Assembly (NCBI GenBank): GCA_002189035.1
Contig: NEEC01000016.1
Span: 620,001 to 684,000 of the forward strand
Origin: Utricularia gibba
Lineage: Eukaryota; Plantae; Magnoliophyta
DNA: 64,000 nt
Direction: 5' to 3'
The notes under the pieces are model-generated. The model worked only from the letters and a program-made list of their open reading frames with translations. It searched no databases and was not told the origin of the DNA. The translations under genes were made by a program, and so were the position numbers. Shown here in pieces: positions 8,005 through 48,816 of this stretch; the first letter of the stretch is position 1; each line of letters begins with the position of its first letter.

Positions 8005-10015
8005 ATGAAGATTGGCGGAGGAGTGCTGTTTGGGATTCCACGCGCCGCCGCATTTCCCACAGGTCTCCAAGGCCGCCGCTTGCCGAATCTTCGCTGCTAC
8101 TCTTCTTCGTATCCTGGTACTCCAATTGCATTTTCAGAATTCCCGAGTTGTCTGTGCGGGAATTTGAGGTTTTCTCTAATGCAGACCACGCGCAGTTTAT
8201 AAAGGAAATTTCGGGTTTGGAGCCTCCCAAGCATTTGAAGAGTCTTCTCAAGATACTTACTGCTAGAGGTGAATCTCATCCCCTGAAACTTGATTCTAGA
8301 TTCGTTGGATTTCCCTTATATGTGGAATTCCGGAATCACATTGTCAGCTGTAGAAAACATGGCAACACCGTTGAAGATATAGTTGTTTTTTTTTTTGCTT
8401 TCGCCCTCATAACAGGTGAAGAATTACTCTCACCTGGAGCAAAGCGTGGAATGCTTCCTCTTTGTATCCCTCTCTCACGAAGCACTTCAGGTTTTTCTAA
8501 TGGCAGATAGAACGAGCATATGAAGCATTCGGCAACATTTTTTTGTTTTTGATATATCTGCATTTGGCATCGGTAGGCTCAATCACAGCATTGTTACGTT
8601 GGCCGACTGCTCCATCTTGGTAAACTGACCTCAACATGGAACAGAAAGCAATACTGCCATTGAAAGAAATGTGATGTTTTGAGTGCAAGTTTGCAGGATG
8701 GAGATGCCAGTAGTGGAGGTACACAACTATGGAGTGTGGTTTCTGGCTAAAAGTGTGAGCAGTTTTTTTCTGTTCACCATATTCAAGGGGGCTTTATTAC
8801 AGAAGGAGTAACATAACATATACCCATGTTGTTCTCTTGCTGTTGTTTGCTGTATCTGTATACAGGTTGAGCATTATATAAACAGAATATTAGCAGAAGA
8901 AGATGTCAAGAACTGCCAAGAAAGAAACGATGAGTTATTTGTTGTTTCAGGGGACTCCGGAAATGAGTTGTACAGACAGGGTGATTTTGCTGCTTCTCAG
9001 ATTTCAAGCTTGGAGACCTATCTTTTGAAGAAGGTAGCAGTTCAATTGGAACTTCTTACGTGGAACGAATCTTATATGTTTTATTTCTTTTTCGAATGGC
9101 ACAAGATGTACGAAACATGGGAAATCTAGTATAAGAACATTCTTGAGAGCCACTTCATTGTTGAAGCTACATTTATTATATTACAGGTGGGATTGTTTCC
9201 TGACATACTAGAAGACAAAATTAAGATGCATTTTGAGAAAGGAGACCATGTAAGATATTTTACTTGTGTTCAATGCGGAATGGTCTCTGTTTCCGTTTAA
9301 TGATACACGTTCTGTTGGTGTAAGGTTTCAGCTTTGGTGACTGCGGAATTTTATACCAAGAAGGAGCACTTCCCAGGTTTTGGGCGTCCTTTTGTCTTCA
9401 ATGCAGAAGTAATGATGAGGTAAATTAGATCCTATCCTTCTTCTACTGCAAGCACATATCTTGATCACCCTTCGTCACTTAATGAACTATCATTCTTCAT
9501 TGGCTCCCTAGAGTTGGACGACTCCCGGAAGCCAAAGATTCGGCAAGGGGAGCTCTAAAATCCCCTTGGTGGACTCTGGGCTGTCCGTATCAGGTATAAA
9601 CAAACAAAGCAGCTTTTCAAGCATTCAGCACAATGTGAGTTTCCAGGTTCACATAAACAAACAAAGTAGCCTTTCATGACTTCTCTAGGAAGTTGCTGAA
9701 ATGGCTCAATGGGAAGACGAGCAGATTGAGTATATCAAAGAGAGGGTATCAGAAGAAGGGAGGAATGAAGACATAAAGAAGGGAAAGGCGCCTGCTCAGG
9801 TCCAGCCACAGCATTGTTTCTCTCAAACATCATGCATAACATCTATTCCTTTTCATATTTTCTGAGCGCAGGTTTCACTTGATGAGGCTGCGTTTTTGTT
9901 GGATCTGGCTTCCGTTGATGGCTCATGGGATGACGAATGCCTGGAGAGGGTCTCCGAATGCTACAAAGAAGCTGGGCTCCATCAAATTGCGTCATTCATA
10001 CTTTACAGAGACTGA
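8005..10015 (+). CDS. PAB: PROTEIN IN CHLOROPLAST ATPASE BIOGENESIS (PAB)-like, about 11 exons
   Basis: Spliced translation MKIGGGVLFG...EPPKHLKSLLKIL..GEELLSPGAKRGMLPLCIPLS..GSITALLRWPTAP..MEMPVVEV..FPGFGRPFVFNAE..GALKSPWWTLGC..EAAFLLDLASVDGSWDECLERVSECYKEAGL; all introns GT-AG and in frame. Confidence 0.88.
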
Positions 10016-10312
10016 CAAGATGTGAAGGAAAACGAAGCAATGACTCCTTTGTGGGACAAGTGCCCGCAACTCCAACCCAACATGCAGTAACAAACAGAAA
10101 TATGGCTGCTCACCCATTCTGATCTTGTTGTGGAGGAAGTCGTGTCGGCCACAATGGAATGCAATTCTTTTTAAAGAAAAAAAATGGAAGAATTCTTAAA
10201 TGGGGCTTGAGATCAAGTCATTCCTGTTTGTCTGACTGATGATGAGCCCAGGGGAAAAAAAAATTAACAAAAGAAAATCTGCCGCAAATTGCGTTAGATG
10301 GGGTGGGTGGGC

Positions 10313-10317
10313 AAAAA
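10313..10317 (-). terminator. Putative RNA polymerase III terminator (T5)
   Basis: TTTTT on the minus strand 7 nt after the snoRNA-like 3' stem. Confidence 0.55.
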
Positions 10318-10324
10318 GGAAGAA

Positions 10325-10411
10325 GAGCTCAGGAGAGTGCTACTACTTCGCTCACATGAACAGCGATGCCCGGAACCCCCTGGTACCGGAAGGCACATTT
10401 CTTCATAGCTC
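10325..10411 (-). ncRNA. Box C/D snoRNA-like RNA (87 nt) directly downstream of a tRNA-like element; possibly snoR43 family
   Basis: 5' GAGC (10411-10408) pairs with 3' GCTC (10328-10325); box C variant ATGAAGA at 10406-10400; box D CTGA at 10332-10329. Guide target not identified. Confidence 0.68.
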
Positions 10412-10413
10412 GC

Positions 10414-10476
10414 GGCGCTTGCCGAGGATCGAACCAGGGCCGTCAGCATGATAGCGTTCAACTACACCGCTAGTGC
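10414..10476 (-). tRNA. Degenerate tRNA-Gly(GCC)-derived element (63 nt) without a normal anticodon arm; not a decoding tRNA
   Basis: GCACTAGCGGTGTAGTTGAACGCTATCATGCTGACGGCCCTGGTTCGATCCTCGGCAAGCGCC. Against the plant tRNA-Gly(GCC) sequence as I recall it: 14/18 identity at the 5' end, 20/28 at the 3' end, and a middle 8 nt shorter. B-box GGTTCGATCC retained; CAA triplets and AT-rich DNA lie upstream. Confidence 0.75.
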
Positions 10477-10679
10477 TGAGTTGTTGATGTTGGTAAATGT
10501 AACAAAAACTAAATATAACATTAATTTATAATTTTTTATTACATTTTAAATATGAATTGATTTTATACTAGTCATTAATAAAAAAATAATTTCACACATG
10601 CATCAATTTTAACTATATTAAAATTGTTAATTCCATTAAAATTAATTTTAAAATGATTTTTCCCTACATAAGCCTTTCT

Positions 10680-12852
10680 CTAGGGATCACTGGTACCAAC
10701 CCCCACAATTTCCTTGACATTGTTGATCATTTTCAGGACTTGCCACATGGTTGGCCTCTGCTCAGGAGACGTGGCGCTGCAGAAGCTGGAAACCTCAACC
10801 AGCATTCTAAGTCTCATATCATCCTCCCCCTCGTCGTCCCGCATTGCCCGGACCCAGTCCGACATGTCCGGTGGCTCCAGGAACGGGTGCTGGGAGGGGT
10901 GCTTCCCGGAAAGGAGCTCCAGAAGCAGGATTCCGAAGGAATACACGTCGGACTTTGGAGTTGGGAACTGGGAAGAGTTTCGAGTTTCGGGTGCCCTGTA
11001 CTTGGATGACTCTTGATCGTCGTCCGGGGAAGTGTTGACTGTGGGAGTGAGGCAGTAGTCGGCCAAGCAGGCCTCGAAATCTGACCCCAACAGAACATTG
11101 GAAGACTTGAGGTTGCCATGGATGAACCTTGATGCTTGATGGATGTAAGCCAGCCCCTTTGCTACATCCTCTGCGATTTTGAGGCACGATGTCCAGTGGA
11201 GAGGCTTCCCCTTCGCTGATCTTGAACCTGTACCAGGAACCAGTAGAAAACGATGTCCTTAGTTGTCACAAACTACAGTCTTTACTCAAACATTCAGGCT
11301 CGCATTTGCATCACAGACCCCATAAAACACACAGATATTGCTTTCGAGATCAAGCAATGGCACAGGCAAGACAAGTTTTTGCAGTGCCAGAGCTCCCATT
11401 TTGTAAACTAATATAAAGGGTGCATAGAAGAAGGCAAATCACTTGGTTGTGATCTCAGGAAGCTGAGAAAGCTTACCATGAATGAGATTGAACAAGCTTC
11501 CATTGGGTTGGTAATCATAAATGATCAATCTTTCTTGTTTGGCTCGGAAATAAGCTCTTAATGGAACCAAATTTGGGTGTCTGAGAACTCCAACGGATTC
11601 CATGTGTTGCTCAAAGGCTTCTTCACTTACAACGGCGGTTTTGCTTGAATCCAGTCTCTTCAAAGACACGGTTAATTGACTTCCCACCACAGCTTTGTAT
11701 GTCGTACCAATGGAGCCCCTTCCGAGAAGCTCAGCTGAAGCTTTCATCAGTTGCTCCAAAGTGTATTGCTCATCCTCCGCTGAAAAAAATATCAAATTCC
11801 CACCTGCAAAACGGTTGCGTACATTTCTCTTGACTCCAAAGATAGTGTTTTCAGGTTGGATTGATGAGAACGTGGCCGTTTCACATGGAGCTCTTACATC
11901 TGGAGTTCTTTCTTCTGCTTTGCGTTGAATCTGTTGTGTTTCTCCACTTTCCTCTCCTCTTCCTCTTCTTCTGAAAAGTGCAAATACACTTGAAAATGCA
12001 AGAATGAGAATCAGAGCTCCTGTGAAGAACCCAAGAAACAAGCCCACTTTTACACGATGTTTTCTTTGATCTGGAGAAGTATCATATGATTGCGCGTTTT
12101 GCATAAGGGGTGACGGAGGAGAAGGCAATGGGCGGTGGTGGCGGGGGAGGTGGAGTTGAAGAAATTGGCATCTCGACAAGGAACATTGATAACTTTCCCA
12201 CATAAGCCAGGATTATGCAGGAAGGAGAAAATGGTGAGCTTCTTCAAGGTTGGGTTAAAGGAATTTGGCCAGAAAGATTGTTATGCGAAACATTCAACAC
12301 TCTCAAATTCGTCTGATTCAACGGCGGAATAAACCCAGAAAACCGATTGAATTCGAGACGGAGAGATTCCAACAGAGGCAATCCCTTCAAGTTCTCCGGC
12401 AGAAGCCCGGTGAAGTTGTTATGAGAAAAGTCAAGAGCTTGCAGACGGTGGAGGAACAGGACAGACGGAGGAAATTCACCGGAAAAGTAATTCCGACCCA
12501 GTAACAAAGTCTTGAGATTAACAAGAGTCGAAAGGTCCGGTACAGGGCCGGTGAGCGAATTGTTCCTCAGATTCAGAACCCGGAGCTGGTCCAAGCGGCT
12601 GAGGGTGGCCGCCGCCACACCGCCCCGAAGCCCGAAGCTTTCTACATCGTAGCGAACGACGCGGCCTTGTACACATTTCACTCCCCGCCACTCACAGTGA
12701 TCGAAGGGCTCATTCATATTGTAGAGGAGGACGTTGTTCAAGTCCGCCGCCGCCTTAAAGCCCAGGAGGCCGACGGCGTCAGTTGGAAGAGCCGTCACTA
12801 AATGTGCGCTCCCACTGAGGAGTATCAGCTGTAGGAGAATCATAGCGAGCAT
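10680..12852 (-). CDS. LRR receptor-like kinase (LRR-III type, At5g67200-like, probably catalytically atypical), 2 exons, two apparent 1-bp deletions
   Basis: Signal peptide, LRRNT (C.WRGVKC), LxxLxLxxNxL repeats, NPGLCG cap, transmembrane helix, kinase domain with [11 protein letters not shown] and HGNLKSSN. Intron 11476-11228. Frames join by adding a base at 12252-12254 and at 12130-12132. Confidence 0.93.
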
Positions 12853-46572: not shown

Positions 46573-48710
46573 TGCAAGTTTCCAAAAATTGAGTCCCTGA
46601 AAAAACAGCCCCCAAAAAATTGTCACCTTTGCTAGCATAAAAGATTTTAGTTCGAGTTTTACCCAAATGAATGAAAACTTTCACCTTTAGAAAAAGCGAT
46701 ATAAAAATTTTAACAGGAAACATTTCTAGTGTATATTTAGTATACTACGTAGAGAGCAGAATCATCAACACTGACAGTTAATTAATTCAGGGCAAACGCG
46801 CTGTTAATAGCAAAGAATTCAGATGACAAGAATTATTTGAGAACTTTAGGGGAAAAAATCACCAATAAAGAACACATAAAAAGTCAAGATCAGGACCATC
46901 TCAAAGCCCAAAAGGTTAAATGTACGTTTAGCAGCACCAGGATTAAAACTGGTACATTGAACACAACAGTTTAAATGGCGGCTTTTACATTACAATCCCA
47001 TACCAAAAACAACAAGTGATGAAAAAAATAATTTCTTCACGAATTCAACTTCCGGGTACCAATATGGCCTAGTCGCATTTATAAGCTTTTTAAACAACTA
47101 CACATATTCAAGTTCCAAGCATCGACTTCAAAATGCATTCACAAACAATTGCCCACTGAGCAGTGGAAAAAACCTGTTCTTCGGAAATAAGTTAAAGCTG
47201 TATTCTTTCACATATAAAGCAGACAACTTTACAATCCATCATTAGAATACTTTAAAAAAGTTGGAACTTCTGTACGTTGATACACATGAAAATTAAATGT
47301 TAATCAGACATCAGTTTTCCATGTGAATTACCGGATTTCTTTAACGAGAAGTAAAATCTTTGTGCGACGAACAAAGACCTGTTTAACATAAAGCCTAGCT
47401 AGACTGCACATAAAGAAACTCAGGCACATGAGTGAAATCCAAGAAAAACATGAACACTATGCGCCACTAAGCTCACACAGATTAAAAGCCTCAGCCATTA
47501 ATGCGTCCGAATTACTAAATGTGCAGCCACTAAGATCATCAGGTGATATAAACCCGAAAACATGCAAATGAATCGCCAGAATTCATTGACCGGAAATCAA
47601 GAAATAAAATCACATGCAAGGCCGATGCCCAAGTTTACAAAAAAAAAAAAAATTCAAGAATAACAACTCGCATTCCTCTACTTCCAAAATAAAGTAAAAT
47701 TTTTTGGCATGTACCCAAAACACCATCAGAACTAACGTGAACTGCATCTAGAAACCCGTATGCCCAAAAATGAAAAAAAAAAAAAAAAACGATGACCGAA
47801 AATGTACAGTAACAGAAAGAACAAAAAATTAAGGAAAGAAATAGAAGAACCATTCACTACGACATCAAAACAAAACCGCTTTTGACCCCAAAAGACAATG
47901 GAACTCCCCACAAAAGTCAATGAAACAACCACCAGAAATTGAAGAAGCAAAAACATTGACAGCCCCAAGACTCGCTACCTCAAGAGGTGCCGACGGAAAG
48001 AAGGATACCACACAACCAAGAATTTCGAAAACTTCCGACCATCACAACCTTTTACCTAGAAGATTCCGCCAATAGATTCTTGACCAACTTATTATTCGCT
48101 TTAGCAGGGATTTCAAAAGTAATCGTTGGTAGTAGATGGGCCTCCAGAAATCCCGGCCCATGGGCCTCCACTTATGCCTGCCCTGCTGGCACGTCTATAA
48201 TTATATTAGTAATATTTGAATTTTAAAAAATAATTAAAATTTAAAGAAATTTAAAAATATTTCCTTTTCTAAAAAAGGAAAGACTTGGACCACAGGGCGC
48301 AGAAGTAAGTACCATCAATTTAGGGTTTATAAGGATGGGGCAACTCTATGAAAAGACACTTCACCATAAAAGCCAGGCACCCTTGGCCTACCAATCGGGT
48401 CCGCTGTCGGGTCAAAGTGTTGGATCCAATTATACCTTTACTTTTTTTCCCCAAATGAATTTAATTTTATATAATACGAATCAGGAGGCTAATGAGGTAC
48501 GCGAGACGAACCTTCTGAACCCTTCCCTCTGTTCTCGATCTCCATCTCCTCCTCACGGCTGGTGCAGCGGCGATCGGTATCGTTCTTCGTTCCCTCTCAG
48601 CCCTGGATCTACTTCTTCTCTGTAGAATCCGATCAATCCGCTTTCTTTCCTGCTGTGTTGGGAGTGAGGATTGAGAAGGATAAGCGGATGAACTGCGAGA
48701 GCGAGGCGTT

Positions 48711-48816
48711 GTTTTCTGGTGCAGCATCCTCAAGATTCACGCAACCAGAGACTGTTGACGGTGCTCAGCAGCCGTTAGATCGTGAGAATCTTGATGATGC
48801 TGCATCGGCAATCAAC
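48711..48816 (+). ncRNA. MIR172: MIR172 precursor hairpin
   Basis: Exact mature miR172 AGAATCTTGATGATGCTGCAT at 48785-48805; star arm GCAGCATCCTCAAGATTCACG at 48721-48741; TATATAA at 48468. Confidence 0.97.

Follow-up and report, generated by a model that had tools for sequence, protein, structure and literature searches.

Can a transfer RNA (tRNA) gene lose the ability to decode and still persist as the promoter and processing signal of a small nucleolar RNA (snoRNA) that follows it? This question is raised by a unit on the minus strand of a 64,000-nt stretch of Utricularia gibba DNA (contig NEEC01000016.1, positions 620,001 to 684,000; the whole stretch is called the window here), in which a 63-nt relic of tRNA-Gly(GCC) is followed, 2 nt further on, by an 87-nt box C/D snoRNA. 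Plant tRNA-snoRNA dicistrons are the textbook example of a snoRNA that uses the RNA polymerase III (Pol III) promoter and the processing enzymes of a tRNA. To our knowledge, the tRNA also works as a tRNA in the known dicistrons, so the two roles are inseparable there. Dicistrons of tRNA-Gly(GCC) and snoR43 are reportedly the subject of Kruszka et al. 2003, EMBO J 22:621.

From its homology to the plant family, it is near certain that the window unit is a diverged paralogue of the dicistronic tRNA-Gly(GCC)-snoRNA genes. Whether it is a live Pol III unit, in which the relic would still drive and process the snoRNA, is in our judgement evenly balanced, and the evidence on each side is weighed below.

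The tRNA-Gly relic and the snoRNA behind it

The unit is laid out on the minus strand as follows, where R1 is a covariance model of the snoRNA family, described below.

10481 to 10490, minus strand: CAA motif ACATCAACAA, directly 5′ of the tRNA-like element (direct reading)
10414 to 10476, minus strand: relic of tRNA-Gly(GCC), 63 nt (alignment to canonical tRNA-Gly)
10458 to 10469, minus strand: degenerate A-box region CGGTGTAGTTGA, aligned to TGGTCTAGTGGTA of canonical tRNA-Gly
10425 to 10435, minus strand: B box GGTTCGATCCT, matching the consensus GGTTCGANNCC at 10 of 11 positions
10412 to 10413, minus strand: 2-nt spacer GC, from the discriminator position of the relic to the snoRNA stem; the expected region of an RNase Z cut
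10325 to 10411, minus strand: box C/D snoRNA, 87 nt, with GAGC/GCUC termini (R1 and direct reading)
10400 to 10406, minus strand: box C, AUGAAGA (direct reading)
10370 to 10389, minus strand: internal hairpin CCGGUACC-AGGG-GGUUCCGG, aligned to the family hairpin by R1
10360 to 10363, minus strand: degenerate D′ box CUGU, aligned by R1 to family CUGA(U)
10345 to 10349, minus strand: degenerate C′ box GAAGU, aligned to family GAUGA, with both family-conserved G kept
10329 to 10332, minus strand: box D, CUGA (direct reading)
10313 to 10317, minus strand: T5 run resembling a Pol III terminator, beginning 7 nt past the 3′ stem of the snoRNA

A sequence-only reading of this DNA had listed the CAA motif, the relic, the spacer, the boxes, the stem and the T run, and direct reading finds every one of these features on the minus strand where that reading had placed it.

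We compared the relic with the canonical 71-nt tRNA-Gly(GCC) of plant contigs, which hold almost only tRNA-Gly(GCC), and found identity at 46 of 71 positions. The 16 substitutions, which fall at 26% of aligned sites, comprise 9 transitions and 7 transversions, a mix that looks neutral. A further 10 positions are indels (9 nt deleted, 1 inserted), and 6 of the 9 deleted nucleotides are the 3′ strand of the anticodon stem together with the first part of the variable region. The alignment scores 19, a value reached by 0 of 5000 dinucleotide shuffles (−3.7 ± 3.35); when only the 5′ 38 nt are compared, so that the generic T arm is left out, 4 of 5000 shuffles do as well. Because the shuffles do not reach the alignment score, we take the relic to be derived from tRNA-Gly(GCC), from which it has drifted far.

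In the acceptor stem 5 of the 7 pairs remain, one of them by way of a double change (C5-G68 to U-A), and the two broken ones read A.C and A.A. A D arm of 4 bp and a T arm with 4 of 5 pairs and a U.C mismatch are still there; in the place of the anticodon arm stands a 15-nt linker that holds a residual mini-stem, UCA-UGC-UGA. Read against the A-box consensus TRGCNNAGTGG, the A-box region is degenerate. ARAGORN calls no tRNA in the whole window; on the unit itself, with relaxed thresholds or in intron or mitochondrial mode, it does not call the relic and returns spurious calls across other parts only. Nor does the Rfam tRNA model (RF00005), with which a canonical plant tRNA-Gly(GCC) scores 62.5 bits, match the relic at E ≤ 10. 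Since the 3′ side of the anticodon stem is lost and 16 substitutions have accumulated, it is near certain that the tRNA half is unable to decode. A tRNA-Gly origin and the lack of a usable anticodon arm had both been proposed beforehand, and both are borne out by the comparison with 5000 shuffles and by the silence of the tRNA callers.

The snoRNA half can be placed with similar firmness. A pattern scan of metagenome contigs yielded 120 plant loci with tRNA-Gly(GCC)-snoRNA units, and the snoRNAs behind canonical tRNA-Gly at these loci form one box C/D family of 75–99 nt (median 86). Its members share the termini GAGCU-R-UGAUGA ... CUGAGCUC, a GGGU-loop hairpin between box C and D′, and a T run soon past the 3′ stem. 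Among 141 units of other plants, ARAGORN does call the tRNA, nearly always with the canonical sequence. In an alignment of 67 distinct family members from other plants (A1), RNAalifold predicts 14 pairs, of which 9 show compensatory changes, and gives a terminal stem of 4 bp and an internal hairpin of 7 bp; the internal hairpin (A1 columns 29–54) shows covariation in 7 pairs, for example UA in 47 and CG in 19 members at one pair. The covariance model R1 was built on these terminal and internal helices with the window sequence left out. It gives one real match in the 64-kb window, exactly at 10325–10411 on the minus strand, over model positions 1–89 of 89 (37.6 bits, E 1e-6 for the 64-kb window).

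In its dimensions and boxes the unit falls within the range of the family, as the following rows set out.

Spacer after the tRNA: 2 nt in the window, 1–10 nt in the family
snoRNA length: 87 nt in the window, 75–99 nt (median 86) in the family
Box C: UGAAGA in the window; in the family (n = 78 distinct members) UGAUGA in 55, UGAGGA in 15, UGAAGA in 4 and UGACGA in 4
Box D: CUGA in the window and in 74 of 78 family members
First T4 past the stem: 7 nt in the window, 0–12 nt in the family
CAA within 12 nt upstream: present in the window and in 66 of 75 distinct tRNA-Gly-snoRNA units

The window unit thus shares its layout with the tRNA-Gly(GCC)-snoR43 genes of plants (CAA, tRNA-Gly-derived element, short spacer, box C/D snoRNA of about 87 nt, T run), and its snoRNA has homologues among the tRNA-linked snoRNAs of many plants. 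It is unlike those genes in that its tRNA half has no usable anticodon arm and mismatched acceptor and T stems. The earlier assignment to the plant dicistronic tRNA-Gly-snoRNA type therefore holds, given the R1 match and a spacer, length and boxes in the family range, and so does the claim that the snoRNA ends and boxes are intact: GAGC/GCUC, AUGAAGA and CUGA are all there, placed as a kink-turn would need them.

Among Rfam models, the best match to the snoRNA is snoR114 (RF01421), which covers positions 1–87 of 87 at 18.9 bits and E 0.37, short of the gathering score of 45. An Rfam search had been proposed as a check on the unit, and its outcome is mixed, with a full-length match that stays below threshold on one side and a match to the independent C/D family model R1 on the other. 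Several tRNA-linked members (L011, L039, L015, L085 and L014) likewise lie below the RF01421 threshold, while in 5 of 8 loci tested the snoRNA next to a canonical tRNA exceeds it, at 62–84 bits. Because RF01421 matches tRNA-Gly-linked snoRNAs at such scores, we regard Rfam snoR114 and the tRNA-linked snoR43-type RNAs as one family, and the window snoRNA, by its sequence and predicted fold, as a member of it. Examples of snoR114-matching snoRNAs that lie 6–7 nt behind a canonical tRNA-Gly(GCC) are L016:262-428, L007:2355-4939 and L065:58-222 (62–84 bits).

The motifs of the unit are short, which is the sole point in favour of a chance resemblance to tRNA and snoRNA, or of a tRNA-derived short interspersed element (SINE); we give these readings a negligible probability. 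Chance resemblance is rejected by an R1 match of E 1e-6 with exact end-to-end boundaries and by a tRNA-Gly similarity that beats all 5000 shuffles. A tRNA-derived SINE is rejected as well: the element is single-copy in the window, lacks both flanking target-site repeats and an A-rich tail, and ends in a T run after the snoRNA.

The sequence-only reading had matched the guide regions to no rRNA or snRNA. This is unremarkable, since Arabidopsis RiboMeth-seq data are reported to leave most snoR43 variants, and snoR114 too, as orphans (PMC8053127). The segments past box C and before box D pair together at −5.8 kcal/mol, compared with −2.4 kcal/mol for shuffles, and the family shows the same tendency (mean −6.85 vs −3.99 kcal/mol). 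In many family members the two supposed guide segments pair with each other.

Selection or decay

The proposition to be weighed here is that tRNA decoding was lost long ago and that the relic is kept, or was long kept, purely as the Pol III promoter and the RNase P/RNase Z handle of a snoRNA still under selection; we would put it just short of an even chance. The idea of a decoding-dead tRNA joined to an intact snoRNA, as the sequence-only reading had it, holds up, while its further suggestion that the relic survives as a promoter and processing module is only plausible. The opposing reading is a tRNA-Gly-snoRNA dicistron that has become a dead pseudogene, in which the motifs are intact by chance or the snoRNA died recently. 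We consider this an appreciable possibility, though somewhat under even.

All 18 of the family-invariant end and box positions of the snoRNA are intact, whereas even decay at the 26% seen in the relic should have cost 4–5 of them, and the probability that 18 positions stay intact under joint neutral decay is 0.742^18, or about 0.005, an estimate that assumes equal rates and makes no correction for the choice of the locus by its intact boxes. Beside a tRNA diverged at 26% of sites, the 18 intact positions favour continued selection. The internal hairpin points the same way. At 10389–10370 its stem has 7 standard pairs on either side of a single U.U mismatch and closes on an AGGG loop, with stem letters (CCGGUACC/GGUUCCGG) wholly different from those of the family (GUGAUGgu-aGGG-UccAuCAc) and the same G-rich loop. 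Survival of this hairpin through changes on both sides of the stem speaks against simple decay and, as a pattern of substitution, favours continued selection.

A second copy of the locus gives a further view. DNA contigs of two other runs carry the same truncated form and no intact tRNA-Gly at this locus, so the truncation flagged by the sequence-only reading recurs in other reads. One of these contigs (X3, 3935 nt, from another sample) holds a locus copy diverged by about 4% in non-coding DNA. The 63-nt relic, B box included, has no change in it; the spacer has one substitution (10413 G>A) and the snoRNA three (10369, 10381 and 10397), all at family-variable positions. The flanks carry 7 substitutions and 5 indels, or 12 events in 159 nt, among them a 12-nt deletion of 10491–10502 that brings TATA-like elements closer to the relic and a 2-nt deletion that lengthens the T run. 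By one-sided Fisher test the relic differs from the flanks at p 0.016 for all events and at p 0.09 for substitutions alone. An unchanged relic in a diverged copy, with the B box and the T run intact in both copies, favours continued selection over a dead pseudogene.

Across 10100–10734, X3 and the window differ by 12 substitutions and 18 gapped bases, concentrated in 10254–10532. Over 10707–10800 there are two contigs at comparable depth, of which one agrees fully with the window and the other shows 11 differences from it; the sample is therefore heterozygous or carries two close copies of the locus. A search with the final exon of the receptor-kinase gene next to the unit led to the two nearest relatives examined (77% and 72% amino-acid identity), which are too distant or paralogues; in both, the B box, tRNA and snoRNA are absent downstream of the kinase.

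A number of observations weigh against a living unit, and several of them speak for a pseudogene. The relic folds poorly, with −2.1 kcal/mol for the forced tRNA-like fold without an anticodon arm, compared with −15.7 kcal/mol for its best alternative fold and −33.2 kcal/mol for a real tRNA. Because this fold is marginal and the acceptor stem is interrupted twice, the mismatched acceptor and T stems may make a poor substrate for cutting by RNase P and RNase Z. A box and B box lie about 8 nt closer together than in any normal tRNA gene. On the snoRNA side, the D′ (CUGU) and C′ (GAAGU) boxes are degenerate, and the R1 score lies at the bottom of the 37–85 bits of the training members. Between the two copies, moreover, the snoRNA changes at about the rate of the flanks (3 of 87 vs 7 of 159 substitutions) and is not significantly conserved, and the conservation test for the relic is itself weak, with p 0.09 on substitutions only and flanks that are AT-rich and indel-prone. 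The count of 18 intact positions carries an ascertainment bias, as intact boxes were what drew attention to the locus.

Decayed copies of the family are, in addition, common in other plants. At L093:7832 both the B box and box C are destroyed; at L036:1230-1400 a 41-nt deletion inside tRNA-Gly leaves GCAC abutting the T arm and the 3′ acceptor strand; and at L048 and L010 the snoRNAs are truncated. The clearly dead L093 copy, with both its B box and its box C hit, is nevertheless unlike the window unit, where both boxes stand. The RNA searches also lean towards a silent unit, since a run search with the unit alone found it in none of the listed RNA runs, and RNA runs X6 to X9 contain only the flank (X6 covers only the 3′ end of the convergent gene described below). 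We treat this absence as a weak negative, because poly(A) libraries rarely show snoRNA.

Possible routes of expression between two convergent genes

If the unit is a live Pol III gene, its expression can be pictured step by step. TFIIIC would bind the B box and the residual A box of the relic, helped by the TATA-like and CAA elements, and Pol III would transcribe from about 10476 to the T5 run. The layout that such transcription calls for is largely present: there is a B box, an upstream CAA (CAACAA at 10486–10481 on the minus strand, −10 to −5 from the relic) and a T5 run after the snoRNA, a sequence scan finds no T4 run inside the unit, and the A box is degenerate. Further upstream lies an AT-rich stretch whose TATA-like elements occupy −54 to −33 relative to the first base of the relic.

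10509 to 10530, minus strand: upstream AT-rich stretch with two TATA-like elements, TATAAATTAA at 10530–10521 and TTATATTTAG at 10518–10509 (direct reading)

Protein-only RNase P would then remove the 5′ leader, and RNase Z would cut after the discriminator position, 10414, freeing the 5′ end of the snoRNA. Both enzymes would recognize the acceptor, T and D parts of the relic, and neither would need an anticodon arm. Plant PRORP requires the acceptor stem and the D domain, not the anticodon domain, and Arabidopsis tRNA-Gly-snoR43.1 has to be cleaved by RNase P before RNase Z can cut it (PMC3858429). The part lost from the relic would thus be the part that the processing enzymes can spare, which by analogy fits the idea of a promoter and handle without proving it. 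La protein would sit on the U tail of the precursor (PMC12972900), C/D proteins on the AUGAAGA/CUGA kink-turn would protect the RNA of about 87 nt, and the relic fragment would be thrown away. The A that replaces the usual U in box C could pair with the U of box D.

The surroundings of the unit would also allow another source of transcript. The unit sits between two convergent genes, in an intergenic gap of about 400 nt. On its own strand, a receptor-like kinase gene (stop codon at 10682–10680) ends 204 nt upstream, and on the opposite strand the transcribed 3′ end of a convergent gene approaches it.

10535 to 10540, minus strand: AATAAA, the likely poly(A) signal of the receptor-kinase gene, 59 nt upstream of the unit (direct reading)
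10102 to 10277, plus strand: transcribed 3′ end of the convergent gene, from an RNA contig of run X6 that stops 36 nt short of the T5 run

A live snoRNA might accordingly be released from RNA polymerase II (Pol II) read-through of the receptor-kinase gene, with the relic acting as a cleavage signal only or lying idle. Two things speak for this: the unit has the orientation of the kinase gene and lies close behind it, and the family has members without a tRNA that carry a TATA element at about −30. Dicistronic tRNA-mRNA transcripts of plants are also said to have been described in a bioRxiv preprint (10.1101/2020.04.13.039131). The AATAAA lies between the kinase stop codon and the unit, however, and judged by this position the kinase mRNA probably stops before reaching it. 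The full Pol III layout is kept, from the CAA and the B box to the lack of an internal T4 and the T5 just past the stem, and no RNA contig runs from the kinase gene into the unit. We therefore regard read-through as improbable.

The tRNA-less members in question are family snoRNAs at L015:2809-2892 and L009:1018-1101, each with a TATAAAT element about 30–40 nt before the snoRNA. Because such members exist, the family is not tied to one expression route, and their sequences suggest that it has more than one way of being expressed, the second of them independent of a tRNA. Both snoRNAs have a normal tRNA-snoRNA unit upstream, no more than a few hundred bases away.

Related systems and variant copies

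Dicistronic tRNA-Gly(GCC)-snoR43 genes are known from plants (PMC3858429, PMC2875012, PMC8583080, PMC12972900), and a limited literature search found no paper on a decoding-dead tRNA relic before a plant snoRNA. Arabidopsis snoR114 is an 88-nt orphan that stands solitary and intergenic (PMC2685112, PMC8053127). It shares with the window snoRNA the termini GAGCU.UGA.GA ... CUGAGCUC and the position of the internal hairpin, and differs in an entirely different hairpin stem sequence and in that D′ and C′ are degenerate in the window. The closest precedent for a tRNA that serves a passenger RNA comes from murine gammaherpesvirus 68, where tRNA-pre-miRNA genes give a Pol III transcript from which host RNase Z separates the tRNA-shaped element and the downstream small RNA (PMC4378190). 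These genes differ from the window unit in being viral, in having a pre-miRNA hairpin as passenger and in a tRNA element that still folds. In plant mitochondria, the non-decoding, tRNA-shaped t-elements serve as cleavage signals for RNase P or RNase Z (PMC3858429); they lie inside longer transcripts not made by Pol III, have no snoRNA fusion and fold stably, which the window relic does not.

Should the relic prove to be a maintained promoter and handle, loss of decoding with maintenance of the snoRNA would be a natural separation of the two roles of a tRNA. It would show which tRNA parts are enough in vivo, namely a B box, D arm, T arm and partly paired acceptor stem, and that the tRNA half of the dicistrons can shrink to its acceptor, D and T parts. 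Plants would then have, in this unit, a cellular equivalent of the herpesvirus tRNA-pre-miRNA genes, and so minimal a unit could inform compact tRNA-based expression cassettes. If it is silent, it is one more pseudogene of a multi-copy family.

Variants of the family in other plants are worth recording beside it. The tRNA remnant at L036 is minihelix-like, and box D of the family snoRNA that follows it reads ATGA. The minus strand of L022 has a canonical tRNA-Gly with no full snoRNA behind it; in its place stand a perfect hairpin of about 30 nt (GAAGGGTGCT-GTGATGAACCG-AGCACCCTT), which contains a box C-like TGATGA, and then a T run.

Elsewhere in the window, the C-terminal exon of the plus-strand gene at 9868–10277 reads by eye as ...SLDEAAFLLDLASVDGSWDDECLERVSECYKEAGLHQIASFILYRD, with a stop codon near 10005. 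A MIR172 precursor at 48709–48815 on the plus strand is the window's only Rfam match above threshold (72.9 bits, threshold 70).

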